NCBI GenBank assembly: GCA_004431415.1
Contig: QPMI01000339.1
Location: forward strand, 1-40,259
Reading direction: 5' to 3'
DNA length: 40,259 nucleotides
Origin: Cyanophora paradoxa CCMP329
Lineage: Eukaryota > Plantae > Glaucophyta
Part shown: one piece after another, positions 5,059 to 39,690 of the stretch
Numbering within the stretch: the first letter of the stretch is position 1
Layout of the letters: every line of letters begins with the position of its first letter
Translations under genes and position numbers: made by a program
The notes under the pieces: generated by a model
Told to the model about the DNA's origin: nothing
Databases searched by the model: none
The model's input: the letters and a program-made list of their open reading frames with translations, nothing else

Positions 5059-5093
<35 letters not shown>

Positions 5094-8000
5094 CTTCTGG
5101 AGGCGGGCGCCGTGGATCTCGCGGGCGGCGACCTGCGGGTCGCTGAGGGAGACCTCCTTCACCGCCCGCTTGATCTCCCCGCCCCCGTCCGCCCCCTCCG
5201 CCCCCCCCGCCCCCTCCGCCGCGTCGCCGTCGCGGAGCCAGGTGGCGGCCCACTCCGGCAGCGCGATCGCGTACACTGCCGCCGGCCCGTCAGCGGGGGC
5301 GGGGCGGGGCGGGGCGGGGGGGGGGAGGACCGCGGCCGAAGGCGCCCTCGCCGAGCATGGCGAGGGGCTCGCGGACGCTCCGGAGGAGGGGCTCGGGGAC
5401 GGGGCGCGGGGGGGCGAGCGTGGCGCGCTGGGCGAGGGTGAGGTCGTTCGCCTCCTCGCCGAGCACGGCGCTCGAGCCGCCGGCCGCCTCCGCGGGGCGC
5501 GCCGCCCCCAGCAGGTCCAGCTCGTCCCCCGTCAGCGCCGGCAGGTCCAGCTGCCCCCGCCCCCTCGTCAGCCCCGCCACGCGGCCGCCAGCGGGCGGGC
5601 CGGCGCACCCAGACGCTGGGGAGGGAGCCGTCGGTGTGCGGGGTGAGCCCCGTGATCGCCTGCAGCAGCGACGCCGACGAGTGGAGCGAGATGAACGGCA
5701 TCTCCGCCGTGTCCGTCGGCGAGCCGGCCCCGAACGCCCGCGCCCGCTGCCGCCGCTTCCAGTACACCCCGAAGCCCACCCCGATCGCGACCACGAGAGC
5801 ACCCGCCGCCGCCGCCGCGCCTATCGCCGCGCCCATCGGCGAGCCGCCACCGCCGCCGCCCGGCGCGCTGGGGGCGGCGGCGGGGGCGGTGGCGGGGAAG
5901 GTTGGCGTGGGGGGCGGCTGGTCGACGAGCGCGACGGGCTGCTCGGGGGCGAGGATGGTCTCGCCGCGGGCGAGGGCCTCGGCGGCGGGGCCCTCGGGCT
6001 GGAGGCCGGGGGCGAAGGTGGCGTTGCCCATGGCGGCGACGGGCCGGTCGTCGAGGCCCGGCATGAGCAGCTCGCCGGCCCGCGTCAGGTTCGCCATCGC
6101 CTCGAGGATGAACGCCGCCGGCAGCTCCACCGCCACCGACTTCGACGCCAGCACCGCCTTCAGCACCTGCCGCGGCCCGTCGGCGGCCCCCGACGGAACC
6201 TTGGCGGGTGAGACGGCCGGCTCGTTTCGCGCACCTGAACGTGAAACAGGATGGAGCCGCATCGGACGCCGGCGATTTGCACGCGCCCCTGCGCCCAGGG
6301 CGGCCGAGGGTCGGGGGCGGGGAGCGGGGGGCGGGGCGGGCGGGGGGACCTCGTCGAGCTCGACGCGGAGCGCTGTGGCGAGGAAGCGGGAGAAGCCCTG
6401 GGAGACGGAGGCGAGGCTCCGCCCCTGCACGTACGCCTCGCACTCCCCCCGCGTCGCCGGCACCGTCAGCCAGAACTCCACCTCCACCGACCCCGCCCCC
6501 GCCGCCGGCGTCGCGCTCGGCGCGGGCGGCGTCGGCGCGGCGGCCGCCGGGGCGGCGCCGAGGGCGTCGGCGTGGGCGCGGGGGAGGCGGCCGGGGGTGC
6601 AATGGGCGGCGAGGGCGAGGGGGTCGGGGCGGCGGCGGGGCGGCGGGGTGGGCAGCGGGGTCGGCTGCTGCGGGGGCGGGAGGAGCTGGAAGGGGACCGC
6701 CGGGAGCTCGCCGTCCGACGGGTAGCCGCAGGCGGCCGCCGCGAGGGGCACCGTGCCTGCGCGATCGCGACCCGACCGTCAGCGGCGCGAGCCGCGCCGC
6801 AGCGCGCGCGGCGACGGGGCGGGAGCGCACCGGCGAGGGAGAGCAGGCGCGACTGCTGCGCTGGCCCCGTCTCGTTCGCCACGCCGAAGAGCATCCTGGC
6901 GCCTCGCGGGGCCCCGTCAGGCGGAGCGGCGCGATCGGCGGGCGGGGCCGGCGCGGGGCGCACGCGGTGCACGAGGAGCAGTCGGCGACGAGGGCGGGCG
7001 AGGCGAGGGCGACGCCGAGGCCGGCGACGTGCTCCGCGGAGGCGTCTGCGCGCCGGCCGCTCAGCCGCGCGGGGCGGGGGCCGGAGCAGGGCCGGGACGG
7101 CGGGGCGGGCCCTTGGGGTCGAGGAAGAGGAGCGTCGCGTTCGCGTCGGCGAGCACCGCGAAGAGGTACCCCTGGCACGCACCCAGGCGGAAGGCCGACG
7201 GCGACGAGCGCGCCACCGCCCCCGCGAGGCGGGCCGCGCGGCCCCCCGCCGCGCTCCAGCCCAGCTCGATCGCGCTGCCCGCGCAGAACGCGTCAGCGCG
7301 GGTCCCCGCTCCGTCTGAGGGCGTCGCGGGGCGGCGGAATGGACGGACTGTATCTCAATCGTGGCGTCCCCATCTTCCGACACGACCGCCACATACCAGG
7401 TCCCGTCTGCCCGGGCGGGGCGTTGGACAAAAAAACTGAAAGCAAGAAGGAAGTGATCGAGCACCGATGCGCGCGCAAGACGGGTTAGGCCGCCGCGGCA
7501 GGTCCACGTTGCCTTGTCGGATGTTGGCGTCAGTGGCCCACACCCGGCCTGACACGTCGTAGCTGGCGGGCGCAGGATGAGTCAGATATGGTGCCTAGAT
7601 CTAGAAACGAGCAAGGTCGACGCGCGCTCATTGTGCAGACCTGATCAGGTCGTTGCGCGCCGCGCCGTTCGACCCCTCGCCGCCGAAGACCTGAGGCGGC
7701 CCGTTCAACCGCAGCTACTTCGAATGAAACGAGCTCGGAGCACCCAGAGTGTGCGATTGAAAACCGTCATGCCTGCGGGTTGAAGAGCAGGTGAGAGTTC
7801 GAGGCGCGCGAGCGGCGGGCTCGGGATGGCGCGCACAGTGGTTCGCGCGGGGGGCGGGCATGGCGGGGAGGTCGACGCGCTCGTCCAGCGAGCTCGAGAG
7901 CGCCCACGCCGCAGCGCTCGCCTCGTCCGTCGTCCCGACGTACCCGCCTGCGCCCCCCCCCCCCCCCCACCCGCTCACGCCCGGCTGGCTGCGGGGCCCC

Positions 8001-8164
8001 GGCAGGCGCTCACCGGTGCAGAAGACGGCCGCCGCGTTGTCCCACGCGCACTGCACCCCGTAGCCTTCGAAGGGGGCCCGTGCCGTGGCCTCCGCCCACG
8101 TTCCTCTCTCTGCGTGCGCGGCGACGCGGTTGGGCGCGGGCAGCGCGGGGGGGAAGGGGGGGAA

Positions 8165-8196
<32 letters not shown>

Positions 8197-11100
8197 ACTG
8201 GGGAGAGGGGCGGGGCGGACCGACGTCGTGAACGAGGATTGCCCCGCCGGCGGCGGCTGCCGCCGAGGCCGGCCGGCGCCCGAGCAGGGCGACCTTGGCG
8301 AACCCGAGCGAGCTGCGGAAGGCGACGACGGCCGAGAAGGCGGCGCCCGGCGCGACGAGAGCGCTCGATAGCGACACGTCGCCGCGCTTCATGAGGAAGA
8401 CGCCTGCCGGCCGCTCGCGATCGGACGGGGCCGGCGCGCGCCCGGAAGGAAGGCACGCCCCAGCAGCGCTCACCGGGGACAGTGGCGGGGGCGGGCGGGG
8501 ACCAGGCCGAGGCCACTCCAGCCGAGGAGAGCAGCCGCGCCGTGCACGAGGCGGGCCAGCTGCCGGCCTCCGACACGGAGACGGGCAGGAGCGCACGGAG
8601 CGGAGGGGAGGCGGCGGTGAAGTTGGCGGCGTACGGGCCGCCGGCCCCCGTGCAGCGCACGTCGGCGAGCTCGACGCTCTGGCCGGCCGCGAAACCAACC
8701 TCCAGCGCCAGCGCCGAGGCGTTCGCTGCAGCGAGCGACGCGATCGCCGGCGCCCCCGGCGCAGCTACCGCGACGGGCGGCGAAAGGTGGAGCCGGTCAG
8801 CCCACGCCAAAAGCTGCTGCATCTAGGAAATACCTGCAGGGATCGATGTCGCCGCGCGGGCTGGAGGCGAGAGCAAGCCCGTCGTGGCTCGCACGGAGAA
8901 CGCGCAGTCGACAGAGTAGCTTCCGCTGTATTGAGGACGCGTCGCAACCAAGAAGCTGAGGCGGCCAGCTGCTCGCTGCAGCGCGCCAACGGGGACGCTC
9001 CCAACATACGTAAATGCTCTGCCGGATTCGTTGCAGCTGTGCTCGAGATAAGCGACGCCCTGCTCCGAGGAGAATGCAGCGTCCGCCTGGAAGCACGTCG
9101 CGTTGATCGCTGTCAGAACGATGTCCGACGGAGTCCACGGATTGGCTGCTCGGGACAACGATAGTCAGAAATCGCGAGATCAAGCGTGGAAAACCCATGG
9201 CAATCGGAAGGGGCAGACCGGCCAAGACGGGGAGCGATGCGCGTACGCCGGGCGTGCTGGGAAGCCCGGTCACTCCCACGGCAGATAACGCGCAGTCGAG
9301 GGTGTAGTTGCCGAGGTACGATGGAGACACAGGCATCAGCACGACGGCGCCGCTCGAATCTGTGTCGGCGACCGCCGGGAGAGCGCGGTAGGGCCCGCCG
9401 ACACCTGAACAACTGACATTGAGCGAAGTCACGTTCTGGCCAGCTCGGAAACTCAAGCGGAACTCAGCGAGCGAAGAATTCAATGCCACGGCCGAGAGAA
9501 GCGCCGGCATATCCGGAGCCGCTGCGAGATAGATTCAAACAAACACTTGAACTAATCGCAATGGGTTTCACGGAGCGCACCTGCTGGCACCGTCACCACG
9601 GCGGCCGCAGTCCACGGCGACGACAGACCCGTCGACGCCCGCACGAGCGCCCTGCAGCTCAGCTCGAAGCTGCCGCTGTACGACGGCATGAGACCGACGC
9701 TGATGTTCAAACCCGACGCCGCAGCGCCCGTCACCGTCGCATTGACCGCGTACGGGCCGCCAGCGCCCAGGCACTGCATTTCGACCGCCGACACGCTTTG
9801 ACCGGGCGTGAACGATACGCGCACCACTGCTTGCGTGGCATTCCAAAACACGACGGCCGTCTCAAGCGGCGCCCATGGCACGGCTGCAGGATGGCATGAG
9901 ATCGCAAGACGCAACCAAGATCAGAGCCTTATTATCAGCCAGAAGGGGTAGCCGCCAGGTGCGCACCAGCTGGAACCGTCACCATGGCGGCCGACGTCCA
10001 CGACGACGGCAGTCCTGACAACGCGTGAACGCGTGTTGCGCAGCTCAGTTCGAAGCTGCCGCTGTACGACGGCACAAGACCGACGGTGATGTTGATGCCC
10101 GATGCTGCAGCATCTGTCGTGGACGCGTTGACAGCATACGGATCCCCGACGCCCGAGCAATAGACTTCCACTGCCGTCACGTTCTGGTCGGGCACGTATG
10201 GCACTCGAATGACGGCCTGTGTCGCGTTTGTTGCGCTGCCAAGGTTGGACAGCGGCGCCCAGGGCACGGCTGCGCAGCCGAGCAAGACGTGCAGCAAGGC
10301 GAATGTGAGCGGTGCAACTGGGAGGAACGCACGCCGCCTCGACAACGCGGAAACCAGCTGAGCGCACCTGCTGGCACCGTCACCACGGCAGCCGACGTCC
10401 ACGGCGATGGCAAACCCGTCGACGCCCGCACGAGCGCTCTGCAGCTCAGCTCGAAGCTGCCGATGTAAGACGGCACCAACCCGATGCTGACGTTCACGCC
10501 CGATGCAGCAGCATCGGTCGTGGACGCGTTGACTGCATACGGCCCGCCGATGACCGAGCTCGAGCAAAAGACTTCCACAGACGTCACGTTCTGGTCGGGC
10601 ATGTATGCCACTCGAATGACGGCCTGTGTAGCGTTTGTTGCGCTGGCGAAATTCGACAGCGGCGCCCAGGGCGCGGCTGCGCAGTCAGGCAGAACGGGCG
10701 ACCAGGCGGATGTGAGCGGAGCAACTGGGGAGGAGGCCTTGAAAACTCGAGCTCAGAATACAGCCGAGCGCACCTGCTGGCACCGTCACCATGGCGGCCG
10801 ACGTCAACGTCGACGACAGACCTGTCGACGCCCGCACGAGCGCCTTGCAGCTCAGCGCAAAGCTGCCGCTGTACGACGGCACGAGACCAACGCTGATGTT
10901 CACGCCCGACGCCGCAGCGTCCGTCACCGTCGCATTGACCGCGTACGGGCCGCCAGCGCCCAGGCACTGCATTTCGACCGCCGACACGCTTTGACCGGGC
11001 GTGAACGACACGCGCACCACTGCTTGCGTGGCATTCCAAAACACGACGGCCGTCTCAAGCGGCGCCCATGGCACGGCTGCAAAAGAGCATGAGATCGCAA

Positions 11101-14100
11101 GACGCAACCAAGATCAGAGCCTTATTATCAGCCAGAAGGGGTAGCCGCCAGGTGCGCACCAGCTGGAACCGTCGCCACGGTGGCCGACGTCCACGACGAC
11201 GGCAGTCCCGACAATGCGTGAACGCGTGTCGCGCAGCTCATCTCGACGTTGCCACTGTACGACGGCACAAGACCGACGGTGATGTTCACGCCCGAAGCCG
11301 CAGCATCTGTCGTGGACGCGTTGACTGCATACGGCCCGCCGCTGCCCGAGCTCGAGCAATAGACTTCCACTGTCGTCACGTTCTGGTCGGGCATGTATGA
11401 CACTCGAATGACGGCCTGTGTCGCGTTTGGTGCGCTGACAGAAGTCGACAGCGGCGCCCAGGGCACGGCTGCGCAGCCGAGCACAACGTGCAGCAAGGCC
11501 AATGTGAGCGGTGCAACTGGGAGGAACGCACGCCGCCTCGACAACGCCGAAACCAGCTGAGCGCACCTGCTGGCACCGTCACCACGGCAGCCGACGTCCA
11601 CGGCGACGGCAAGCCCGTCGACGCCCGCACAAGCGCCCTGCAGCTCAGCGCAAAGCTGCTGCTGTACGACGGCACGAGACCGACGCTGATGTTCATGATC
11701 ACGCCCGACGCCGCAGCGCCCGCCGCCGTCGCATTGACCGCGTACGGGCCGCCAGCGCCCAGGCACTGCATTTCGACCGCCGACACGCTTTGACCGGGCG
11801 TGAACGACACGCGCATCGCAGCTTGCGTGGCGTTCCAAAACACGACGGCCGTCTCAAGCGGTGCCCATGGCGCGGCTGCAATAGAGCATGAGATCGCAAG
11901 ACGCAACCAAGATCAGAGCCTTATTATAATTATCAGCCAGAAGGGGGAGCCGCCAGGTGCGCACCAGCTGGAACCGTCACCATGGCGGCCGAGGTCCACG
12001 ACGACGGCAGACCCGACAACGCGTGAACGCGTGTTGCGCAGCTCAGTTCGAAGCTGCCGCTGTACGACGGTACGAGGCCGACGGTGATGTTGATGCCCAA
12101 TGCTGCAGCATCTGTCGTGGACGCGTTGACAGCATACGGCCCGCCGCTGCCCGAGCTCGAGCAATAGACTTCCACTGCCGACACGTTCTGGCCGGGCACG
12201 TATGACACGCAAATGACGGCCTGTGTCGCGTTTGTTGCGCTGCCAAGGTTGGACAGCGGCGCCCAGGGCACGGCTGCGCAGCCGAGCAAGACGTGCAGCA
12301 AGGCGAATGTGAGCGGTGCAACTGGGAGGAACGCATGCCGCCTCGACAACGCGGAAACCAGCTGAGCGCACCTGCTGGCACCGTCACCACGGCAGCCGAC
12401 GTCCACGGCGATGGCAAACCCGTCGACGCCCGCACGAGCGCTCTGCAGCTCAGCTCGAAGCTGCCGATGTAAGACGGCACCAACCCGATGCTGACGTTCA
12501 CGCCCAATGCAGCAGCATCGGTCGTGGACGCGTTGACTGCATACGGCCCGCCGATGACCGAGCTCGAGCAAAAGACTTCCACAGACGTCACGTTCTGGTC
12601 GGGCATGTATGCCACTCGAATGTCTGCCTGTGTAGCGTTTGTTGCGCTGGCGAAATTCGACAGCGGCGCCCAGGGCGCGGCTGCGCAGTCAGGCAGAACG
12701 GGCGACCAGGCGGATGTGAGCGGAGCAACTGGGGAGGAGGCCTTGAAAACTCGAGCTCAGAATACAGCCGAGCGCACCTGCTGGCACCGTCACCATGGCG
12801 GCCGACGTCAACGTCGACGACAGACCTGTCGACGCCCGCACGAGCGCCTTGCAGCTCAGCGCAAAGCTGCCGCTGTACGACGGCACGAGACCAACGCTGA
12901 TGTTCACGCCCGACGCCGCAGCGTCCGTCACCGTCGCATTGACCGCGTACGGGCCGCCAGCGCCCAGGCACTGCATTTCGACCGCCGACGCGCTTTGACC
13001 GGGCGTGAACGACACGCGCACCACTGCTTGCGTGGCATTCCAAAACACGACGGCCGTCTCAAGCGGCGCCCATGGCACGGCTGCAGGATGGCATGAGATC
13101 GCAAGACGCAACCAAGATCAGAGCCTTATTATCAGCCAGAAGGGGTAGCCGCCAGGTGCGCACCAGCTGGAACCGTCGCCACGGTGGCCGACGTCCACGA
13201 CGACGGCAGTCCCGACAATGCGTGAACGCGTGTCGCGCAGCTCATCTCGACGTTGCCACTGTACGACGGCACAAGACCGACGGTGATGTTCACGCCCGAA
13301 GCCGCAGCATCTGTCGTGGACGCGTTGACTGCATACGGCCCGCCGCTGCCCGAGCTCGAGCAATAGACTTCCACTGTCGTCACGTTCTGGTCGGGCATGT
13401 ATGACACTCGAATGACGGCCTGTGTCGCGTTTGGTGCGCTGACAGAAGTCGACAGCGGCGCCCAGGGCACGGCTGCGCAGCCGAGCACAACGTGCAGCAA
13501 GGCCAATGTGAGCGGTGCAACTGGGAGGAACGCACGCCGCCTCGACAACGCGGAAACCAGCTGAGCGCACCTGCTGGCACCGTCACCACGGCGGCCGACG
13601 TCCACGGCGACGGCAAGCCCGTCGACGCCCGCACAAGCGCCCTGCAGCTCAGCGCAAAGCTGCCGCTGTACGACGGCACCAGCCCGACGCTGATGTTCAC
13701 GCCCGACGCCGCAGCGCCCGTCACCGTCGCATTGACCGCGTACGGGCCGCCAGCGCCCAGGCACTGCATTTCGACCGCCGACGCGCTTTGACCGGGCGTG
13801 AACGTCACGCGCGCCACCCCAAGCGTCGCGTTCCAGAACACCACGGCCGTCTCAAGTGGCGCCGATGGTGTGGCTGGCAGACAGTATGAGAACGCAATAC
13901 TAAAGTAAAAGTCTGTTCAGCTGCCGGCGGCGGCCAGGAGCGCACCAGCTGGAACCGTCACCACGGCGGCCGAGGTCCACAACGACGGCAAACCCGTCGA
14001 CGCCCGCACGAGCGCCCTGCAGCTCAGCTCGAAGCTGCCGCTGTAGAGAGGAGGCAGCGCGAAGCTGAAATCGATGCCCGCGGCCGCTGCGTCCGTTACC

Positions 14101-17100
14101 GTTGCGTCTTTCTTGTATGTTACACCGTCGCTCGAGCTCAAGCACTCTGCTGTCACTGACGTCACGCTCTGTTTGGACGTGTACGACACGCGAACGACGG
14201 CTTGCGTTGCGTTCGTGACGGAGGCCGCAACTTCGAGTGGCGCCCAGGGCGCGGCTGCGCAGCCGGGCGGGGACAAAGCGCAAACCGCGTGCGTCAGCAG
14301 CAAGCAGGCATACGCGGCCTTTTCTTAAAGCTTCCGACGAAGGAATCGGACTCACCCGCTGGCACCTTCACCACGGTCCCCGAGGTCCACGCTGACTCGA
14401 CGCCTGTAGACGCGCGCACGAGCGCCCTGCAGCTCAAATCGAAGCTGCCGCTGAACGATGGCGCCAGGTCGATTCCGACTTCGAGGCCCTTTGCATCGTC
14501 GTCCGTCGCTGTCGCGTTGACCGCGAATAGGCCCGTGGCGCCCGAACATTCCACTTGTGCCGATGTGACGTTCTCTCCCGGCGTGAACGAGACGAGCACC
14601 ACGACTCGCGTGGCATTCACGGAAACGACGCCCGCCTCCAGCGGCCCGGCTGCGACAAGGCAGAACAAGGCGCTGTTCAGGCTATGGCTGAGAGGGCTCT
14701 GGCCGATTCCGAGGCCAAGTCCGCGCGAGTGCACCTGGTTCGTACTCGAAGGGGCCGGCGCAGCGGGTGTCCGACACAGAGAGCGTGAAGCTGCCGCTGG
14801 TGGGAGAGGTCCCCAACGCGGCTGCGCATCCGTTAGCAGGCCGCCGCATGGCACACGAACATCCCCTTCCAAGCATATAGCGATCACACCGGAAGCGATC
14901 ACAAACCAGCCGCCCCAATACCACTCGTCATTCGCAAAGAACAATCGACTCGCACCTTCCACAATGACGTAGTACGGGTGGTTTGGCATCAGCGTGTAAT
15001 ACTTCTTGTCTGTCACGAGCAGCGAGCAGCTCCCTGACACTAAACGATGCCTCAGCACACGGCGTTGGCCAGACGCGGCGACGAAACGCACCGCTCGCGA
15101 TGAAGAGGCTGCCCGCGGCTCCGGGACAGCCGATGTAGAAGTAGAGGTTAATGTTGTCTAGGGGAACATCCGGCTGGGGCGTGCAAACGGAGATGTTTGC
15201 TTGTTTTCTGAGCACAGCGGGCCGTGTCAGATCATCCTGCGCATGCTCACCAAGAGTTCAACTGAGAGACACACGTCGCTCTCGCGAGATTGCGGAGGAG
15301 GAAAAGGGCGCCCGGCTTTCCGGATCCGCCCGCGACGGGCGTGCGCCCCAGCAGCGTCGAGCTCCGCATCCGGCAGAATGAGAGCGGGGAGGCGCTCGTG
15401 TTTGCCGAGCAGTGCGAATCTGTTTGAGATGCGAAAGGCAAGTCAGGGGTGGCGTCGAGAATCGCGGCACGCGGGATGATCGCACATAGTGGCGGAGGTT
15501 GCGAGCCGTCCGATTTGCAAGACTCCGATTTGCTGCACCATTAAAGACCCAGCATATGATTATGCAGATTAAGGAATGAAAAAGCAAAGGATCATGCAGA
15601 CCGCGGAAAATCAACATAAGTGAGGCCGTATTCATTGATCCAGGTAGCTATAGCCCACGTGTTCGTGTTCGACCATGTTCTCTCTCTGAAGTAAGCTATG
15701 TAGTACGTGCCTGCAAGCGTGCACTGTGAGCGTGATTGATTTCAACCGCTGCGCACGTGATTACAATCTTATGCACCAGACAAGAGAACTCTGGTATCAG
15801 TTGAAATGCGGAAACCCAAACCAATACCCTCACTATTTGGCCAGAAGGAGTCGTACATCCACATCTTGCGCTGCAAAGGCGTCTACAATTAGCATTTCTT
15901 GGGCAGACAGCTTCGAATTCCGAGCGGCGCAGCGGGCACACAGCAAGAATGTTGGATGCTGGGTCCGTGGGGCAGCCCTGGGGAGCGCGCTCGCGAAGGT
16001 AAAGACCAAAAGAGCTCGAGCCGAAGGAGGAAGGGGGCCCGCACATCCGTAACGATCATGAACTCGTACGACCAAACACACCAGTGGCCTGCCTCGCGCT
16101 CGACTCGTTATGATCCTCGAAGCTCAAAGAGACTTCAGCAACTGGTCCGCACCTCTGTGAACGCTTCCGCCGTACAGGTCGCCGCTGAAATCGGCGAAAG
16201 GACCGTAACAATCGGACCGGCGGGGTAAGAAGCGATTTCCGTTGTTGTCCAAACGAACTTCTCCGCTGTTCAACGAAAAAGGCAGCTCAAAGCGTTGAAC
16301 GTGATCAGTGAATGCCGGAACGTATGCGTAGTATCCAACTGCAGCCTTTTCGGCCAGCCATTGCAGATTCTGCGCGCCGTGGTGACGGTCATTGCGATTA
16401 CCGCAAGTGGAGGGCCCGCCGCGGCACCTGAACGCTGCGGGCTCGAGCGACGACGAGGTCCTGCGAGCACGTTCCCAGCGGGGTGAACTTGCAGGTGCCG
16501 TCGTCGGTCCAGTGGTCGGGCGCATAATCGTGGTACGGGCACGCGACGGTGTCGAAGACGTCGAGGCGGAAGGCGCCGGACGCGTTGCCGAAGCCGCCCC
16601 ACCGGTACGACGTGAGGCCGGGCCCCGCGACGTTTCCGTACACACTGTTGCCCTGGACGAGGACGTAGTACGTGCCGGGCCGGATCGACGCCCCTGCAGA
16701 CCGGATCCCATTGGAGGGAGGGAAAGACCGAGAACAAGAACGTAGAAAGAATTACCGTATCGCTCTACAATGGGATTGCCATAGACATTCTCTGTCCAGA
16801 ACCACCCGTACAGGCGCCGCTCGTACGACGGCATTGTCGGGTTCCCGATGTAGACCGCGAGCGACGGGTACGTCAATTCGAAGTTGCGCAGCGTGATCTC
16901 GAGCCCGTTGCTGCGCGCCCTCGTCAGACGCCGCGCCGGCATCGAAGGCGGACCGCGCGCACTAGTCCTGCTCGATGCGGAGGCGGGCGAGGAAGACGCC
17001 GGAGGCCTTTGCCGGCTCGGAGGCGGCGTCGAAGTACGCGTCGCCCCACTGCAGCAGCTGCCGGTGCAGCGTGCTCGGCCGCCCGGCGGTCGTGTTTGGT

Positions 17101-20100
17101 GTGAACGAGCACATCCCGATTTCGACCCCCGAGAAGAGAGAGGCGTCGTACGCCGCGGGCCCTACCGCCCCTGTCGCACCTGCATGCGTGTTAAGAGGCG
17201 TTTCGCGGTCTAGCAAAGATAGAAGAACGAGCAGGCTGTAGTTCACCGGGCAGAAGCACTTTGGAGACGCTAAGAAGTCGCTTCGGGCTGCCTTGTCCCA
17301 AGATCGAGGCCCGCATCGCGGCGATCGAGCCGCCCACCATCGCGTCCTCGATGGCCTGCCGGCCTCGAATCATCAGGCGGGCCGCGTCGACCAGCTCGGC
17401 TCGCGGGCGCATGCGCACGGAGAGCGGCGAGCCCAGAAGGGCCTGGAGGTAGAGGGCAGCGACGCCGGCGGCGATGCCGGCGGCGTAGGAGGTGCCGTGG
17501 AAGATGCCGGTGGTGGCGTTGAAGCCGGGCAGGCCGTTCGCGCCCGCCACCGCCGCCGGCCGCAGCGCCGACCGCACGTTCTGCCCGGGCGCGAACAGCG
17601 TGACGCAGCTGCGCAAGCGCAAAGTGAGACTGGCGCGCGAGCTTTTGGCGGGGCCCTGGGATCGACCCGGACCTGCCATAGTTCGAGAAGCCGGCGCGGT
17701 AGTCGTCCTGGTCGCTGGCGCCGACGTTGATCGCCCCCGGCGTGTTGCCTGCGGGCGCGAAATGAGACTCCCGCTGGCTCGGCCCGCGCCACGGGGCAGC
17801 TTGCTGGCGCGCCTGGCATGCTGTTGCACGCGTCGGCGTAGTCGTTGCCCGCCGCCTGCGCAGCGCCGTCGGCTTCGGCGGCGGCGTGAAGCAGTGCGCA
17901 GGGCCCGCACCGTTATTACGACAGAGCGGGCCTCGCGCAGGCGCGCGACGGCGGTTGTATACAGCGCAACGACCTCCGCTTTCGGCAGAGAGGAGTCTGC
18001 ATTGCTCCAGGTCAACGAAACGGCGAGAAGGGTCACGGACGGGCGGCCGCGATTCTGGACGGAGGCGAGGACGTCCTCCAGCCCTGGGCACGAGCGGGCG
18101 GGGCGGTCAGAGCGTTACAGGAGCACTGGAACCAAGGCGCTAGAGGGGAAGGGGCAGGTGAGCTCACCAGCCAGCACATCCTCGTGTCTGGCTCTTGCGG
18201 AGCAGTTGCCGGCGGCCCCGCCCGAGCGCGCGAAGACCTTGACGGAGAGAACGGTGGACCCCGGGGCGGCGCCGAGCGTGCGGCCGGCGGCGGCGGCGGC
18301 GACGGCCGTCCCGTGCGACTCGGGCGAGCAGTCGCTCCCCAGGAGCTCGCTGCCCGGCGCGTACAGCGCCGAGTCGACGTCGTAGAGGGGGACCTGCGCC
18401 GCCGCCGTGTCCAGGCCGCGGTCCCAGGCGGGAGGGGGCGGGGCGCACGACGCGGCCCTCGAGCTCGGGGTGCGTGGCGAGCACGCCCGTGTCGACGACG
18501 TAGATGTCCACGCCGGCCCCGTCCACCGTCCCCCGGTCGAAGCGGCCGTCGAGCGGGCCCGAAGCCTGGTCGAGCCTGCACGCGCCGCCGGGGCTCGGGG
18601 GCAGCCGCGGTCCGGGGGCCGCGCGGGGGCGGGGGCGGGGCACCGGTCGAGGTGCCAGGGGGCGACGTCGCCCCAGGGCTGCGGGCCGTAGCCCAGCGCG
18701 GTGAAGTCCACCGCCTGCGCCGGCGACACCGCCTGCGCCGCGTCGGGCCGGCCCGTGGCGCCGGGGGGCGTGCGGACCGCGTCAGGCGCGACGAGTCTGA
18801 CGAGCGCGTGCGAGCGGAGCGACGCCGCATCCTCGGGCGCCATCCTGCCGCGGCGAGCGAGTTACAGGTAGACGTGGAGGGGGGGAGACGGAAGGGCGGA
18901 GCGATTGGAGGGGGGGGGGGGGAGGGGGGGGAGGGGGGGCGGAGGGTTAGAGAGAGGAAGTGGGGAGGAAATGGAAAGGAGGAGGGAGAGAGGGGGGGGG
19001 GGGGGAGGGAGGGAGGAGGGACTTCGGAAGCGCGGAATAGAAAAGATAGAGCGAATGGGTGAGGGAGGAGAGATGGACTTCATGTTGTGCGGAGAAGGGG
19101 GCGGGAAGAGGGGGTGGGAAGAGGGGGTGGTGGGGGAGAAGTGCATTGCGGCCTCCCGAGAAGAGAAATGCATCCCGAGAGGAGAAGGAGGGGTTGAGGG
19201 GGGACGGATGGGGAGAGGAGAGGGGTTACCGCCCGCGGGGTAGAAGGGGAGCAAAGCGAACCCGAAAGGAGGAGGTGGGGGAAGGGGGAGGGAGGCGGAA
19301 CGAGAATCAGGTAGTGAGGCCGAAGCGCATATGGGGGCCGGGGGAATCGAAAAAAAGATTTTAAAAGGAGCATGATCGGGGGAGGAGCATGCGGGCCAGG
19401 AGGATCCAAAAAGAGGGGCCCCGGGAGGGAGGGGCTGTGGGGCCCGGAGAGAGGGGGAGGGGAGGGGCGGAGGAAGCGAAGGGCCTTGGGGTGGGGTGAG
19501 GGAAGGGGGGGGGGGGGGGTAGGTGAAGGGAAGCAAAAAAGGGGGGGTAGGTGAAGGGGTAAGCCGGAAAGGAGGAAGTGGGGAAAGGGGGTAGGGGGGC
19601 GGAAGGTCAGGTAGGGGGGTCGTGGAGCATATGGGGGCCAGGGAGGATCCAAAAGGGGGGGGGCGGGGAGGGAAGGGCATGGAACAGGGATTGAAGAAGC
19701 ATGCCGGGGGAAGGGGGAGGGGGCAAGGCGGAGAGCGGAGAAAGCGGGAATAACAGGAGGAGGACAGAGGGTACGGTGGGGGGAGGGAGGGGGGGGGTAG
19801 ACTGAGGGGCGGAGCCGGAGAGGAGGGGGCTGGGCGGGGGCACCTGGCGCTGAAGCCGAGGAAGGCGCGGCGGTAGGTGTGCCGGATGGCCGCGCCCCCG
19901 TCCACGCCGCGCCGGTCCGCCGCCGCCCGCACGAGCGCCGCGACCGCCGCGAGGCCCCGCGCCCCCGCCCGCCGGTGCAGCGCCTGCGCAGCCGTCGCCG
20001 CTGCTCCTCCGCGGGGGCGGCGGCGCAGCGCGCACCACGATGTACGGAGCAGGCCCCTCCCGATCCTGGATCGCACTCTGCTCGCCGCTATGAGTTTGCG

Positions 20101-20383
20101 GCTCTGAGCTTGCAGTGGCGACAGGTGGATCGCCGACCGCCAGCGCGGCCGAGGCGTGCGCTGTGACACCGTCGACGTCGACGTCTAGCCGCAGCCGCAG
20201 CCGCAGCCGCGAGGAGCCGAAGGTCAACGCGACGAGCACCAGACCAAGAACAGCGAGCGCGCCGAACACTGGCCGTCCCCGTTGTACATGCCTTGCGATT
20301 ACCGGCGCCGCCGCTCTGCTGGAGGCGGTGCCCCGCGCCCGGCTCACTACGCATGCGCCAGTTTGCAGCACGCGCCAGAACAT
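3755..20383 (-). CDS. Giant multi-exon receptor, copy 1: signal anchor + I9 prodomain + S8 subtilase + PPC-like modules + FN3-like repeats + Kelch-like + SEA-like + TM + protein kinase
   Basis: ATG at 20383, TGA at 3755-3757. Exon phases could be followed through GY..AG introns across the domain junctions examined, e.g. ...IEQD-TA|C-NGLEITL (intron 16911-16962), ...ATVPG|GVFLMKRG, ...LLSLA|GTVPLAAA and ...RPTFL|AIRQTLAEM. No separate start/stop is needed between protease, repeats and kinase. A few junctions in 14.6-15.3 kb are less certain. Confidence 0.8.
3980..5365 (-). CDS. Protein kinase domain (TKL/receptor-kinase-like) of copy 1
   Basis: Spliced motifs LGEGAFGRVY, RAVKEV, REI, HPNVL, GMAYLHHELPRPVAHRDLKPQNILV, VGDFGISR, GTLVYLPPE, KADVWAFGIILMEMATGRRPY and QRPTF. 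All catalytic residues are present. Confidence 0.95.
5759..5830 (-). other. Single-pass transmembrane helix of copy 1
   Basis: AAIGAAAAAGALVVAIGVGFGVYW followed by the basic stop-transfer KRRQRAR, placing the kinase inside (positive-inside rule). Confidence 0.85.
6040..6490 (-). other. SEA-like juxtamembrane domain between Pro/Thr/Ser-rich linkers
   Basis: VEVEFWLTV...FSRFLATALRVELDE|GRVQIAGVRCGSILFHVQ|VLKAVL resembles the SEA strand-helix-'GS-hydrophobic' arrangement (inference from motif only). Confidence 0.5.
6830..8410 (-). other. Kelch-like beta-propeller region of copy 1
   Basis: Spliced peptides AVFCTG|GYVGTTDEAS...LPAMPAPRANH|CMTVFNRTLW|VFGGEGSNGAARNDLI|SYDVSGRVW match the Kelch consensus (hydrophobic-GG, ND..Y, W, P.PR..H). 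Confidence 0.75.
8470..14655 (-). repeat. Array of 16 one-exon ~100-aa FN3-like domains (13 similar + 3 divergent), with a 2004-bp higher-order repeat
   Basis: Unit of ~390-400 bp = exon (PWAP...NATQAV.RVS...C.G.GGPYAVNA...GLVPSYSGSF.LSC...GLPS.WTSAA.VTVPA) plus a short phase-1 intron. Near-identical ORFs recur 2004 bp apart (10312/12316, 10484/12488, 11068/13072). Confidence 0.9.
14660..17175 (-). other. Post-protease region with 2-3 PPC (pre-peptidase C-terminal)-like beta modules, Cys/Trp/Tyr-rich
   Basis: Recurrent motif IRPGTYYVLVQG, LLSGTYYIAYF, LMPNHPYYVIVEG, which resembles the 'GTYY.hV.G' strand of PPC domains that follow secreted peptidases. Confidence 0.5.
17250..18700 (-). CDS. 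Peptidase S8 (proteinase K-like subtilase) domain of copy 1
   Basis: PWHLDR|LDQ, GAGVDIYVVDTGV (Asp 18491-18493), SHGTAVAAAAAG (His 18313-18315), AAGND (oxyanion Asn 17844-17846), AINVGASD..D.RAGFSNYG, VTLFAPG..V.SA, GTSYAAGIAAGVAALYL (Ser 17488-17490). Confidence 0.93.
18780..20060 (-). other. Inhibitor I9-like subtilase prodomain (interrupted by a 999-nt intron)
   Basis: PYIVV...IRHTYRRAFLGFSAR|MAPEDAASLRSHALVRLVAPD matches the I9 consensus (YIV; Y...F.GFSA.L; L...P.V..VE.D). Confidence 0.8.
18845..19843 (-). other. Unusually long polypurine/polypyrimidine-skewed intron
   Basis: Donor GTGCCC at 19843, acceptor CAG ending 18845, phase 2, restoring FSAR-MAPED. The + strand is almost entirely G/A. 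Confidence 0.8.
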
Positions 20384-20604
20384 CGATATCAGCGTGCGCT
20401 CTCTACCGCAGCATCTCTACAGCCAGCGGGTTTCATCTGCTGGCGAAGCTGAACAGGTTGCAGCTCGCCGCGCATGCATATGCGGACCGCGTCAATGCGG
20501 TAATCGGGGCGCGCTGGGATGCCGCAAAGATGCCGCTGGATCATGATTGCCCGTTTACATGTCCGCTTTATCGAAGACGCAAGTGTTCGGCGTCGGATCG
20601 CACG

Positions 20605-20773
20605 CGTTCGGCGAAGTAGGTCGTTCGGCGAAGTAGGGCCCGGGGCGAGTCTCGACAGTGGAGAGCGTTCGCAAGCTGCAAGCTGGAAGCCTGGGTGCCG
20701 CGATGCGCGGTGAAAGCTGGAAGCGTGCCACGGTGCAGCTGGAAGCCCGCAGCTGGAAGACCGCAGCTGGAAG
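20605..20773. promoter_or_regulatory. Clustered short repeats 220-390 bp upstream of the receptor start codon
   Basis: CGTTCGGCGAAGTAGG x2 (20605-20620, 20622-20637); AGCTGGAAG x5 (20681, 20715, 20737, 20751, 20765). A regulatory role is inferred from position only. Confidence 0.3.
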
Positions 20774-21541
20774 CCTGCGGATGTGGACGACACGCCGTCG
20801 TGAGGAGTCAGCTGCAGCTGCCGCTAAAGGCGAGGTCGCGATGCTTCCGGATTCTGCGGGGGAAGCTTCGAGAGCCTGTACCCGCGGCTAGCGCCTGTTG
20901 AGTACCCGGGGCTGAGATTTGCTACATTCATTGCAACTCTGTTGTTTGAAAAAACTTGAAAGGACTGTCTGAGGCTGAATCGACATGAAAACTTGAAGTT
21001 GCGCGTGCCAACTTGCAAGTTGGCACTGCGGCCACTGCCGCCACTGCGGCAAGAAGTTTTCAGATTCTTCTCGTGCTCGTTCTCCTTATCTCTCGCGTTC
21101 TCGCGATCGTGTCCCCTGTCGTGATCCCTGTAGCTAGCTCCTATGCATATATATGTCTTGCAATCTCGATTGCCTACGGCTTCGAATTCTTTGATTTGTG
21201 ATTGCTTTGTCTCTGCAGCTGTTCTGAAGCCTTGAAGCATCAGTCTCGAAAAGCAACTTTATGTCACAGTGTATCATATACGTAGTTTCTAGATCTAGAA
21301 TACTGCTTTCTTTCTGATCATGAACGTTAATATCATACAAGAAATTTGCCGAATTACGTATACTAAGTTACTAAGTTAAATCATGTGATTTCTTTGCATT
21401 GTTAATTATCAGAATCGCCGAGTCGGCATAAAAAAATTTAACGCCTCATCACAGTTTCCGATGACGACTCACATGGTTAGACTACCAACACGCAAATAGA
21501 AGACCACAAACAAGAAATTACAGCACTAATACTGTACGACT

Positions 21542-23528
21542 GGGCCCATTCCTATTCCTGCTCTCGCTGCCCCTCTCGACGCTCCTTTCCCCCCATTCCC
21601 TGCGGTCCCGATCCCTGTGCTCCTTGGCCCTCTGGCCCCGCCTCTGCCTCCTCCCTCCTTACAACTTGCTGTCACGGGGCCTCTTCACTTGCCTGTTCCC
21701 CGGCAGGTCCCTGGTCATCTTGCAGCTCCATACCCCTTCTTACCTCTTCCCCTTGCTCCTCCACTTCCGCCCCTGCGAGGCCCTCTTTCTGACGTCCTCC
21801 TGGTTCAGCCCCCTCTTCAGCCCATCCTTCTTGCCCCCGCTTCTGCAACTGTGACGCTGGGCGGCACTATCTTTTTGCATGCCCCTCCCGCCTCTACGTC
21901 CCCGGTCTCTTTGCGTCTGCATCCACTTTCCCGGATCCGCTTGCAGGCCCCCTCGCCTCCAGAGCTCGCCATCACTTCGGCCTCCCTCGCCTCCGCTCTC
22001 GATTCTCCATACCCTTCGAATAGCCGCCTCCTCTCTCCTCCTCCGCCCTCCCTCCCCCCTCGAGCTCCGGGTCCTCGGCCTCTGCCCGCTTCCGAGTGTT
22101 GGCGAGACTGTCCTCTTTTCGATCTCCCCGTCATTCCGGCTCCCTGCTCCCCTTCGGCGCCTCGGGTCCATCTGCGGGTCCTATCCCGCTTCCTGGCGCT
22201 CGTGAGATTCGCCGCCGGCGCCCTCGTCGGGCCCTTGCGCCCTCGAGCTCGTCTCTCTCTGCACCGCCCATGGCCATGACCTCCGTGTCATCTGCTCCGG
22301 CGCCACCCGACCTTTCTCCTGCTTTGCTGCCCTCTCTTCGGCGCCGGCAGCGATCCCCGTCACCTGCTCGTGGCCCTTCCCCTGCCTCCGACCCTTCCTC
22401 GGCCCCTCCTCGCCTCTTCCGTCTCGTCGGCCCCCGCCGCATTCCCGTCGGCGGATCTCTCGATCGACCCTGGACTCTCCGCCTGCCACTGTCTGCGGGG
22501 TACCTCCGCCGCCGTGTTCGGCGCCGGCTGTCAGTACTTTGCTCGGTAGCTCCCCCGTCGTGGCTCCTCGGGGCCTCTTCGTCGTCGTCGTTCGCTGGGT
22601 TCCGGCTCCGGGTCAGATTTCTCGCCGGGCTTACCTTCTCCTGGCTCTGCTCCTGGGCCCTCAGCTCCGGGACCGGCTTCCCCGATCTCCTTCCGGACTC
22701 GTGGTCGTACCCGTCGCCGGCTTGCCGAGCCTGCGGCTCCTTCTACTTCCCCCCGGCGGTTTGCCGGGCCGGACCCTCCGGCCTTTGTTCTTGATACCGG
22801 ACTACCGCCTTTGTCCTTGTCTTCTGCTTCGCTGGTCGCGATCGTATCCCGCCGGCGCCGGCGTACTTCTTCGTCTTCTAGTTTAGTTCGGTCTGGTTCG
22901 GATTCTGATCGTAGTGTTGATGCTAGAGTTAGTTTCAATACTAGCTATAGTCCTCGTGCTCGACCTGTTGTTCGCCGTCGTTTGCAGTTCGATTGCCCGC
23001 CTCGACCCCGGCCGGCTTTAGTGATTCCTTTGACTGTTCTTTTGCCTGCTCTTGATCCGCCTGCTCCGCCTCCTGTGTCCTCCTCGACCTCGTGCCGTAG
23101 CTCTGCCCTTTCGCATCGTCCTGCTTCGCCTCCGCCTCCATGTCGTCTTGTTGTTCCTCTTACTTGTCTTCTTCCTGTTATTTATCTTTCTCAATTTTGT
23201 CCCCCGCTTCTTAGTGATGTAATTCCTTCTGATATTGATGGTATCTCTAGCTCTGGCTCTTCTTCGTGTCAGTTATCCTCTAGCTCTGGCTCTTCTTCGT
23301 GTCAGTTATCCTCTGTCCCTAGATCTGCTCGATTTATCGTCTCTTCTCGCAATCGATCTGTCTCGAGCTCTGTGTCTTTCCTTTTTTATTGTCGATTTTG
23401 GCTCTTTGTCTTATCTTTCTTCGTGCTCTTGTCTTAGTTCTTTTGCTATTTTGTCTCTATGCCCCCTGGGCAGCCCCCGCAGTGCTGGTGTCTAGAGACT
23501 GTGGCCGGTAATTCACCAAAAAAAAAAA
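21542..23528 (+). mobile_element. Non-LTR-type retroposon insertion (probably 5'-truncated or non-autonomous), poly(A)-tailed, 15-bp TSD
   Basis: TAATACTGTACGACT at 21527-21541 and 23529-23543 flanks a C/T-rich ~2 kb segment ending in A11 (23518-23528). Composition switches abruptly at both edges. No RT motif recognised. Confidence 0.8.
23245..23314 (+). repeat. 33-bp tandem duplication inside the retroposon
   Basis: CTCTAGCTCTGGCTCTTCTTCGTGTCAGTTATC at 23245-23277 and 23278-23310. Confidence 0.9.
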
Positions 23529-23548
23529 TAATACTGTACGACTAATTG

Positions 23549-23583
23549 TTTTTTTTTTGGTGAATTACCGGCCACAGTCTCTA
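23549..23583 (-). mobile_element. Ultra-short inverted copy of the same element's 3' end plus poly(A), with its own ~20-bp TSD
   Basis: 23549-23583 is the exact reverse complement of 23493-23527. It is flanked by TAATACTGTACGACTAATTG at 23529-23548 and 23582-23601. Confidence 0.8.
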
Positions 23584-23766
23584 ATACTGTACGACTAATT
23601 GTTTGAAAATTGAAAATCATTTCAACGTGAACATACTACGTACTACACTTATTCAAGTGAAAGCCGAATTCTGCAAACGCAGCAAGCTCAAGGCCTGGGG
23701 TAACAAATTTCAACCGCTGTGAAGCCCGCTAGTTGCGCGTGCCCCCGCGTGCCCCTCGACGTCGGC

Positions 23767-26700
23767 TCAGCGGCGGGCGGGGGCCGGGGCCCGGGGGAGC
23801 CAGGGGTCCGGGGCGAGGACGCTGACGGTCACGGCGACCGCCTCGTGGTCCACGTGCGCCCCCTCGCCCGCCCCGCCGCCCGCCCCCGCCGAGAGCGCCG
23901 GCGCCCCGGGGGCCGGCGAGAAGGCCGGCCCCTCCACATCGAGGTCGATGGTGACAGCCACAGGCGGCTGCGGCAGCATCTCCGCCAGCGTCTGCCGGAT
24001 CGCCCTGCGCGGCGGCGGCGGCCGGCGTCAGGCGCCGAGCAGCTCGGTGCGAGCGGGTGAAACGGGCGCACAGGAAGGTGGGGCGCTGGGAGGAGTTCTT
24101 GGAGAGGCAGGCACGGGCGAGGGGCCGGAGGGGCTCGGGGACGGCGCCGAAGGATGAGCGGGGGAAGGGCTGCCCCCGGATGAGGTGCTCGGGGCCGATG
24201 GCCGCCCCCCCGTACGGCCGCCGCCCCGTCGCCATCTCCATCAGGATGATCCCGAACGCCCACACCTGCCCGCCCCCACCCCCGCGCTCGAGCCCCGCGG
24301 CAGGGCGGGGCGGGGCGGGGGGCGGGGGCGCACGTCGGCCTTGACGGGGTCGTTCTTCGAGTACGTCTCGGGCGGCAGGTAGACCCTGCGCGCGGGCGCG
24401 CGTCGGCGGGGCGGCGCGGGCCGGCGGGGCGGCGCGCGAGAGGGGAGGCGCACAGCGTGCCCCGCAGCGACTTGGCCGTCTCGACGTGCCTCGAGATGCC
24501 TGCGCGGCCCCTCTCAGCCGGCGACGCTGCCGGTCGCGGCGGAGGCGGCGGGCGCGCACCGAAGTCGCCCACGCGCAGCGTCGGGCCCTTGCCGTCGTCC
24601 TGCGGAGCGTTGAGGAAGGGCGGGCGCGGGGCGGGGCGGGGCGGGCCTTGCGGAAGACAAGGATGTTCTGGGGCTTGAGGTCGCGGTGGGCGACCGGCCG
24701 CGGCAGCTCGTGGTGCAGGTACGCCATCCCTGCGCCCCGGGGGCCCCCGCTCCAGCCGCCCGCCGCGGGGCGCGGGCTCGGGGCGGGGCGGGGGGCACCG
24801 GCGGCGATCTGGAGGGCGAAGGAGGCGAGGAGGTCGGCGGGGAGGAGGCCGCGGCTCGCCAGCAGCGCCGAGAGCGACATCTCCGCCAGCGGCATCACTG
24901 CGCCCCGCCCCTCAGCGCGAGCGCGAGCCGGCGGGCGGCGGGCGGCGGGGCGCGCCGATGTAGATCTTGAAGCGGTCCGTGAAGAGCGCCTCGCAGCGCA
25001 GCACGTTCGGGTGGTCGCACACCTGCCCCCCCGCCCCGTCGGCCCGCGGCCCGCGCCGGGGCGGGCGGGGCGGGGGGGGCACCTTCTGGAGGCGGGCGCC
25101 GTGGATCTCGCGAGCGGCGACCTGCGGGTCGCTGAGCGAGACCTCCTTCACCGCCCGCTTGATCTCCCGGCCCCCGTCCGCCCCCTCCGCCCCCTCCGCC
25201 CCCTCCGCCCCGTCGCCGTCGCGGAGCCAGGTGGCGGCCCACTCCGGCAGCGAGATCGCGTACACTGCCGCCGGCCCGTCAGCGCGGGCGGGCGGGCGGG
25301 GCGGGCGGGCGGGGCGGGGCGGGGCGGGGGGGGGGGGGGGAGGGGGGGCGGGCGGGGCGGGCGGGGGCGGGGCGGAGCGGGCGGGGGGCGGACCGCGGCC
25401 GAAGGCGCCCTCGCCGAGCATGGCGAGGGGCTCGCGGACGCTCCGGAGGAGGGGCTCGGGGACGGGGCGCGGGGGGGCGAGCGTGGCGCGCTGGGCGAGG
25501 GTCAGGTCGTTCGCCTCCTCGCCGAGGACGGCGCTGGAGCCGCCGGCCGCCTCCGCGGGGCGCGCCGCGCCCAGCAGGTCCAGCTCGTCCCCCGTCAGCG
25601 CCGGCAGGTCCAGCTGCCCCCGCCCCCCCGTCAGCCCCGCCCCGCGGCAGGCGGCGGGCAGCGCACCCAGACGCTGGGGAGGGAGCCGTCGGTGTGCGGA
25701 GTGAGCCCCGTGATCGCCTGCAGCAGCGACGCCGACGAGTGGAGCGAGATGAACGGCATCTCCGCCGTCTCCGTCGCCGAGCCGGCCCCGAACGCCCGCG
25801 CCCGCTGCCGCCGCTTCCAGTACACCCCGAAACCCACCCCGATCGCGACCAGGAGAACACCCGCCGCCGCCGCCGCGCCTATCGCCGCGCCCATCGGCGA
25901 GCCGCTGCCGCCGCCGCCCGTCGCGCTGGGGACGGCGGCGGGGGCGATGGCGGGGAGGGTGGGCGTGGGGGGCGGCTGGTCGACGAGGGCGACGGGCTGC
26001 TCGGGGGCGAGGATGGTCTCGCCGCGGGCGAGGGCCTCGGCGGCGGCCCCTTCGGGCTGGACGCCGGCGGCGAAGGTGGCGTTGCCCATGGCGGCGACGG
26101 GCCGGTCGTCGAGGCCCGGCATGAGCAGCTCGCCGGCGCGCGTCAGGTTCGCCATCGCCTCCACGAGGAACGCCGCCGGCAGCTCCACCGCCACCGACTT
26201 CGACGCCAGCACCGCTTTCAGCACCTGCCGCGCCCCGTCGGCGCCCCCCGACGGGAACTGGGCGGGGTGAGACGGCCCGCTCGGTTTGCGCACCTGAACG
26301 TGAAACAGGATGGAGCCGCATCGGACGCCGGCGATTTGCACGCGCCCCTGCGTCCCGGGCGGCCGAGGGTCGGGGGCGGGGAGCGGATCGCGGGGCGGGC
26401 GGGGGGGGACCTCGTCGAGCTCGACGCGGAGCGCTGCGGCGAGGAAGCGGGAGAAGCCCTGCGACACGGAGGCGAGGCTCCGCCCCTGCACGTACGCCTC
26501 GCACTCCCCCCGCGTCGCCGGCACCGACAGCCAGAACTCCACCTCCACCGCCCCCGCCCCCGCCGGCGTCGCGCTCGGCGCCGGTGGCGTCGGCGCGACG
26601 GTCGCCGGTGGCGGCGCCGATGGCGTCGGCGTGGGCGTGGGGGAGGCGGCCGGGGGCGCGTCGGGCGGCGAGGGCGAGGGGGTCGGGGCGGCGGCGGGGG

Positions 26701-39657: not shown

Positions 39658-39690
<33 letters not shown>

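Follow-up and report, generated by a model that had tools for sequence, protein, structure and literature searches.

A tandem pair of predicted receptor kinase genes with a subtilase head

A stretch of 40,259 nucleotides (nt) from the glaucophyte Cyanophora paradoxa CCMP329 (positions 1-40,259 of contig QPMI01000339.1, assembly GCA_004431415.1; hereafter the window, meaning this whole stretch) carries two tandem copies of a gene for a predicted receptor kinase whose ectodomain begins with a subtilase. The subject of this report is the region directly behind the subtilase, where the two copies differ in short, heavily diverged patches lying close to nearly identical sequence. The window contains a tandem duplication of ~20.7 kb, with copy 1 at ~3770-19105 and copy 2 at ~23788-40017, and BLAST segments between the two are 84-93% identical. 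A protein search with one exon of the region (exon B below) led to two C. paradoxa proteins in EukProt, and a word search to the model of the other copy. Copy 1 corresponds to P0004 (EukProt tig00001413_g8635, 3712 aa) and copy 2 to P0001 (EukProt g8636 of tig00001413, 3618 aa), and a separate contig encodes a third paralogue, P0002 (tig00000269_g23717, 1838 aa).

The copy-1 gene unit (3770-19105, minus strand) encodes a multidomain protein. In P0004, a hydrophobic, signal-like N-terminus (residues 1-24) is followed by an I9 propeptide (78-152), a proteinase-K/aqualysin-type S8 domain reaching to ~485, the 538 residues under study (495-1032), a long array of ~134-residue repeats, Kelch repeats (2715-2855), a single transmembrane helix (3234-3260) and a protein kinase (3375-3644). 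The S8 domain is recognised by PF00082 (E = 3e-14 on P0004:330-560) and by aqualysin-1 (E = 2.6e-18), and its best solved relatives are aqualysin-1 and the Vibrio and keratinase proteases. The subtilase motifs SHGT and GTSYAAG occur in all three paralogues, and VVDTGV can be read in the genomic translation. The kinase matches PF00069 with E = 1.5e-34 (3422-3642), and its HRDLKPQN motif lies at window positions 4690 and 24688. With a signal peptide, one transmembrane helix and a kinase domain, the protein has the sequence features of a type-I receptor kinase; this assignment is read from the protein model, as the RNA contigs were compared with positions 14400-19100.

Thirteen short exons encode three cysteine-framed modules

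To define the exons we compared contigs from three RNA-like runs with positions 14400-19100, using a DNA run as control. The RNA contigs contain splice joints of the form CT..AC on the plus strand, that is, GT..AG introns on the minus strand, which are absent from the DNA run (intron ends were register-corrected to GT-AG). On this evidence the region has 13 short exons (Z to K), running from 17179 to 14735 on the minus strand and separated by introns of 52-134 nt. Their spliced translation of 538 residues is identical to P0004:495-1032, residue for residue. Copy 2 has the same 13 exons at 35471-37903 on the minus strand, corresponding to P0001, and all 24 GT-AG splice sites are kept in it.

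In the order of transcription, and with the copy-2 counterpart given in brackets, exon Z (16963-17179 [37687-37903]) opens module 1 with the first framing cysteine and is 94% identical between the copies. Exon A (16756-16910 [37474-37634]), placed by RNA joints and frame, has variable patch 1 in its last 48 nt (16757-16804 [37475-37528]) with a 6-nt in-frame indel. Exon B (16428-16693 [37143-37408]) holds the end of module 1, with the motif GTYYVLVQG, and the start of module 2, and is an island of 96% identity. Exon C (16153-16369 [36862-37090]) contains patch 2 (16298-16348 [37010-37069]; 9-nt indel) and a further patch at ~16184-16210. Exon D (16045-16088 [36759-36802]), again placed by RNA joints and frame, contains patch 3 (16045-16077 [36759-36791]), and it is followed by the 36-nt micro-exon D2 (GCPTDPASNILA; 15942-15977 [36663-36698]), which is fixed by the RNA joints 15870>15942 and 15976>16044. 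Exon E (15777-15870 [36489-36585]) carries patch 4 (15799-15870 [36511-36585]; 3-nt indel). Exon F (15602-15710 [36326-36422]) ends module 2 and carries patch 5 (15640-15693 [36364-36405]; 12-nt indel), its 3' part lying inside an identity island that also includes exon G (15486-15532 [36210-36256]). Module 3 starts in exon H (15275-15419 [36002-36143]) and continues through exon I (15092-15207 [35833-35942]), with a further patch at ~15129-15170 that has a 6-nt indel, and exon J (14956-15039 [35693-35773]), with the strand-like motif PYYVIVE, to exon K (14735-14821 [35471-35554]), which holds the last framing cysteine. One more patch sits at the J/K junction.

Both copies are transcribed. Some RNA contigs are free of differences to copy 1 over exons F, E, D2, D and C, and others carry copy-2-specific letters, including a contig (X5) that splices copy-2 patch 1 onto exon B. 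Exon lengths differ between the copies in eight exons, in all eight by multiples of 3, while the intron length differences (-3, 6, 5, 7, -6, 8, -7 and -4) are not so restricted. All 14 cysteines are conserved. Since the frame-preserving lengths, the cysteines and the framework residues are all kept, both copies are functional and under purifying selection. Two joints were seen between exons H and G: 15419>15486, and 15417>15486 with 'GT' between, the second being a copy-2 transcript (position 15418 differs in copy 2). This second form was covered about twice as deeply by contigs as the copy-1 form in runs X1 and X2, although contig depth is a poor measure of expression. The P0001 model lacks 23 residues of exon C (36862-37090) that copy 1, P0002 and the splice-conserved model all have; it also starts ~150 residues later than P0004 and has no signal peptide. 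Both gaps are probably due to mis-annotation.

The 538 residues form three cysteine-framed modules of ~140-200 aa each. Near the end of each is a strand-like motif (GTYYVLVQG, GTYYIAYF and PYYVIVE), followed by G-x-F-x-L-x-V. From their sequence and their position between a proteinase-K-type subtilase and a repeat stalk, the modules are predicted to be extracellular and beta-rich. They matched nothing in Pfam at E <= 10, whether searched as long open reading frames, exon by exon or as sub-ranges of P0004, and this includes the PPC profile (PF04151). For exon B, a word-index protein search gave no match and an exhaustive one gave the two Cyanophora clusters, one insignificant mollusc match and nothing else; relatives of the modules did not turn up in scans of prokaryote genomes or JGI metagenomes. 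An hhalign comparison of modules 1, 2 and 3 with one another showed short collinear motifs but no significant homology. In the ESM Atlas exon B gave weak leads to PPC clusters (feature scores 0.82-0.85) and module 2 matched nothing, while a profile search of the PDB with module 2 returned the lectin domain of Vibrio cholerae sialidase at an insignificant E = 0.064. AlphaFold2 models had a mean predicted local distance difference test score of 28.1 for the three modules (alignment of 3 sequences) and 36.6 for module 3 (2 sequences). A literature search found no description of this gene family.

Identity between the copies is a mosaic that ignores exon borders

Over the kinase half of the gene the two copies are ~94% identical (median of 100-nt windows, 3770-9570). 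Between 14600 and 16400, most 100-nt windows are only 50-70% identical, while the islands at 15400-15600, 16500-16700 and 16800-17300 reach 94-99%, introns included. From exon C downstream the pattern is one of old diverged blocks with identity islands, rather than of small patches in an identical background. Taken feature by feature, identity is 100% in intron F/G, 98% in exon G and intron G/H, 96% in exon B and 63% in exon E. Among the 12 introns, three are near-identical (Z/A, F/G and G/H); diverged ones include A/B (73%), D2/E and E/F (65% and 47%, the two that flank exon E), J/K (55%) and H/I (47%). Introns F/G and G/H together have 134 of 135 columns identical vs 59 of 125 in E/F and H/I (Fisher p = 2e-25).

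The central island (15337-15645, minus strand) has 12 differences to copy 2 in 309 nt, at an offset of 20724. It spans part of exon F, intron F/G (15533-15601, 69 of 69 columns identical), exon G, intron G/H (15420-15485, 65 of 66) and part of exon H, with both introns verified by RNA contigs. A preliminary description of this DNA, made from the letters alone, had reported hypervariable exon patches beside near-identical introns in the two copies, and much of what it saw is borne out. The ten peptides it quoted all translate from the minus strand at their coordinates, and a global DNA alignment confirms divergent patches with in-frame indels next to near-identical tracts, the framework residues and all cysteines being kept. 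Besides the five patches it listed there are the three others given above, in exons C and I and at the J/K junction. The stretch it singled out, 15412-15645, has 6 differences in 234 nt and does contain two introns, although its partner in copy 2 is 36136-36369, 4 nt away from where it had been placed. Identical introns beside patches, on the other hand, are true of the three introns named above; most of the introns adjacent to patches are as diverged as the patches themselves.

The mosaic is equally clear in silent divergence. We compared third positions of conserved codons (first value) with intron columns (second value) in consecutive blocks. From Z to A they differ at 0.12 and 0.06; in patch 1 and intron A/B at 0.20 and 0.30; in exon B and intron B/C at 0.06 and 0.13; from C to F at 0.21 and 0.33; within 15420-15714 at 0.08 and 0.01; and from H to K at 0.25 and 0.45. 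Intron divergence therefore jumps more than tenfold between adjacent blocks, from 0.01 in 15420-15714 to 0.33-0.45 on either side, and the tract breakpoints run across exon-intron borders. Silent divergence that is heterogeneous without regard to exon borders, combined with incongruence among the three copies at the protein level (below), is what gene conversion leaves behind. Recent conversion between the tandem copies as the origin of the identity islands is thus well supported by the sequence comparisons, in agreement with the earlier suggestion that conversion homogenises parts of the gene. A conserved RNA element as the reason for the identical introns was also considered and is unsupported (no Rfam match at E <= 1).

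A second diverged island lies in the subtilase domain at 17800-18200 (copy 2 ~38520-38930), with 51-80% identity in 100-nt windows, and is flanked by stretches that are 92-100% identical. Summed depth of the DNA contigs was 3-6x higher over 16441-17068 and 17697-17853.

The third paralogue shares its patch versions with copy 2

P0002 covers 382 residues of the region and was seen as a protein, so that all tests with three paralogues were made at the protein level. At 59 sites, clustered in the patches, copy 1 differs from the other two, which agree; for copy 2 this is the case at 13 scattered sites. Copy 1 and copy 2 differ at 0.67 of patch columns and 0.11 of framework columns, copy 1 and P0002 at 0.62 and 0.14, and copy 2 and P0002 at 0.17 and 0.10. 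Framework distances are therefore star-like whereas the patches have one deep branch, and the two sets of distances are not proportional (p = 0.009). A maximum chi-squared breakpoint (permutation p = 0.007) separates the first 45 residues, where copy 1 groups with P0002, from the remainder, where copy 2 does. Where copy 2 and P0002 differ from each other, the patches hold no significant excess of the changes (p = 0.11 to 0.5 with different masks), although the test has low power and a threefold enrichment would still be compatible with these numbers. As copy 2 and P0002 are alike in the patches, there are two patch types among the three paralogues and not open-ended variability; the many versions expected of hypervariable receptors were not seen in this small sample.

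At least one further copy is expressed. An RNA contig (X5) joins 17142-17244 by way of 36 letters that are absent from the window and that, on the minus strand, encode a variant form of the exon Z start; these foreign letters imply that the family has an expressed member other than copy 1, copy 2 and P0002.

Substitution patterns in the patches

For the analysis of substitutions, patches were defined as 9-column windows in which at least half of the residues differ, giving 70 aligned codons. The proportions of synonymous (pS) and nonsynonymous (pN) differences in the patches are 0.52 and 0.48, both near saturation, with pN/pS = 0.92 (bootstrap 0.69-1.30); as the patches were picked for being different, their pN is biased upward. 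The other 459 codons have pS = 0.22, pN = 0.077 and pN/pS = 0.35. Within the old blocks, conserved peptides combine pS of 0.6-0.8 with pN of 0.04-0.08 (windows 240-252, in exon C after patch 2), and such saturated silent sites with few amino acid changes read as old divergence under purifying selection. Relative to the introns of the same blocks (0.30-0.45), the patches have diverged ~1.1-1.6 times as much, which is about neutral. Since conversion lowers the silent divergence of the framework, neither the codons interleaved with the patches nor the introns can date the patches, and conversion together with saturation confounds a two-sequence ratio of nonsynonymous to synonymous substitution rates (dN/dS) to the point that it cannot decide on selection here.

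Half of all indel columns fall in the patches, which make up 14% of columns. A compensated frameshift as the origin of the patches can be ruled out because the DNA itself is dissimilar, and a search for patch donor cassettes inside the window found none. The patches had also been called aromatic-rich. Phenylalanine, tryptophan and tyrosine account for 16-18% of patch residues vs 12-13% elsewhere, which is not significant (p = 0.28 and 0.35); it is the region as a whole, not the patches specifically, that is rich in aromatics.

The repeat stalk and the base composition of the window

Behind the modules, the array of ~134-aa units (9570-14650 in copy 1) would form the stalk of the predicted receptor. 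The stalk arrays at 9570-14650 and 29590-35385 are built from a unit of ~400 bp in 9.4 copies (Tandem Repeats Finder), and strong self-matches at offsets of ~2 kb (for example at 30378, 32356 and 34334) indicate a higher-order repeat of about five units. The array has no FN3 or Ig match in Pfam, where the one lead is a weak match to Pur_ac_phosph_N (E = 0.05). Base composition varies strongly along the window. The Kelch/kinase half (1-2000, 4000-9000 and 24000-29000) has a G+C content of 72-82% and long spurious open reading frames in all six frames, and the head region has 56-63% G+C and many codons ending in A or T. Such composition, together with the spliced transcripts, marks the DNA as eukaryotic. 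In the spacer between the gene units (19000-23800; 52-65% G+C), GC skew is +0.51 and AT skew +0.47 at 19-20 kb, turning to -0.3 and -0.58, respectively, at 21-23 kb.

Discussion

How did short, nearly saturated patches come to lie tens of bases from homogenised sequence? We lean, with some reserve, towards old divergence that has been kept in unconverted blocks while conversion overwrote the rest, the patches being loosely constrained surface loops. Under such a scheme the two tandem copies would evolve in concert, and recent conversion would have replaced the greater part of the gene as well as three islands in the head, introns included. In the old blocks, purifying selection would have held the strand-forming framework and all cysteines, while introns and loop-like coding patches drifted to near-saturation and acquired in-frame indels. 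The patches would then be surface loops under weak or type-specific constraint that may set ligand or substrate preference, in two versions, one in copy 1 and the other in copy 2 and P0002. Heteroduplex rejection or selection might keep conversion out of them. Some points weigh against this account. Loop status is deduced from indels, composition and the conserved strand-like motifs on either side; the paralogues seen number three, one of them as a protein; and conversion tracts of hundreds of bases should often erase patches of 30-60 nt, so that survival of the patches may need selection. Furthermore, conserved codons amid the patches have a pS of 0.29, lower than the divergence of the patches (~0.5 per site) and of nearby introns, while the variable codons differ at 1.95 of 3 positions, so that by this interleaved yardstick the patches evolve ~1.7-2x faster than neutral, as positive selection predicts.

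These last figures also speak for the explanation offered in the preliminary description, in which the patches are specificity-determining recognition loops under diversifying selection and conversions that erase them are selected out. The patches do lie in the ectodomain head of a receptor kinase and persist close to homogenised sequence, with distances out of proportion to those of the framework; the conserved codons of exon E have an unchanged third base in 10 of 12 cases (counted from the alignment), and there is a second island of divergence in the protease domain. Yet pN/pS does not exceed 1 despite the upward ascertainment bias, nor is it well below 1, so that the ratio gives neither the outcome that would speak for diversifying selection nor the one that would speak against it. 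Introns in these blocks have diverged to a similar degree, which no selection on amino acids could bring about, so that old neutral divergence is sufficient. Copy 2 and P0002 share their patch versions (17% vs 10% differences in patches and framework, p = 0.11), leaving two types, and the enrichment in aromatics is not significant. Diversifying selection is therefore not demonstrated, and we regard it as rather unlikely. The likeness to immune or allorecognition receptors that was drawn along with it is no more than an analogy.

We give about the same low weight to cassette replacement, in which the duplication is recent (~6% divergence) and the head was overwritten piecewise from a distant paralogue, its divergence being imported. 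The donor would have been P0002-like, if copy 2 was the recipient, or one not seen so far, if it was copy 1. This would explain why the units are 94% identical outside the head and why copy 2 groups with P0002 over the patches and most of the region (57 vs 8 informative sites), with copy 1 taking its place in the first 45 residues; the RNA piece unlike either copy shows that further expressed paralogues exist. However, copy 2 and P0002 differ at ~10% of residues, which means that any transfer was not recent, and neither the window nor the retrieved proteins yielded a donor for the patches of copy 1. That the mosaic stems from a chimeric or collapsed assembly is highly improbable even for a multi-copy family with 2-6x DNA-run contig depth over conserved segments, where assemblers switch copies, because independent contigs of the DNA run agree in every letter with copy 1 across borders of patch and framework (for example 15589-16241 and 14569-15037), RNA contigs are exact on copy 1 from exon F to exon C while others carry copy-2 letters into shared sequence, and open frames and all splice sites are kept in both copies.

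Several known systems resemble parts of this gene. The Xa21 family, Cf-4/Cf-9 and the S-locus receptor kinase with its hypervariable regions are plant receptors in tandem clusters with mosaic paralogues. The Cyanophora genes are like them in having tandem, partially homogenised paralogues and an ectodomain in which short variable patches interrupt a conserved framework. They differ in that no leucine-rich repeat, lectin or PAN domain was detected in the Cyanophora protein, its head carries a subtilase, the host is a glaucophyte, pN/pS is 0.92 and there is no known allelic series. With the PPC domains (PF04151) of bacterial subtilases of the proteinase-K/aqualysin type the modules share their position directly behind the S8 domain, a predicted beta-rich nature and GTYY-type motifs, but they are larger (~140-200 aa), cysteine-framed and without Pfam match or prokaryote relatives. 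PCSK9 has a proteinase-K-like catalytic domain followed by a C-terminal Cys/His-rich domain of three beta-sandwich modules. The Cyanophora protein likewise has three cysteine-containing modules after a catalytic domain of the same subfamily (PCSK9 matches the S8 part with E ~1e-9), although the module sequences are dissimilar and PCSK9 is no receptor kinase. Lastly, positions 300-357 of the module 2 profile, which include patches 3-4, align with residues 36-92 of the CBM40-type lectin domain of V. cholerae sialidase (2w68), a lead of 58 residues at the E-value given above that neither Pfam nor the Atlas supports. Carbohydrate-binding beta-sandwiches use aromatic residues in their loops.

The mechanism we favour for the mosaic, in which tandem paralogues evolve in concert and some islands are spared, is a textbook one; what is unusual is the gene, a predicted receptor kinase whose ectodomain begins with a subtilase. 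The analysis supplies an RNA-verified exon model for the head region and an example of copies at which two-sequence dN/dS is uninformative. The mosaic also marks where the copies differ, in three modules without an assignable family and in part of the protease, and these are the probable sites of ligand or substrate specificity. We know of no described immune or self-recognition receptors in glaucophytes, and proof of diversifying selection or of many patch types would make these genes a candidate family of recognition receptors in this group. A more far-reaching idea, to which we assign a smaller chance than to either of the first two alternatives above, is that glaucophytes have a surface-recognition system in which the patches act as specificity loops, in a few discrete types that selection maintains, conversion sparing the loops because loss of a type is deleterious. 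If so, the paired divergence of protease cleft and modules would come from co-adaptation of recognition and cleavage to different extracellular ligands (microbial or cell-wall glycans or peptides, for instance), and the genes would represent a family of receptors, innate-immune-like or mating-type-like, in the earliest-branching lineage of algae.

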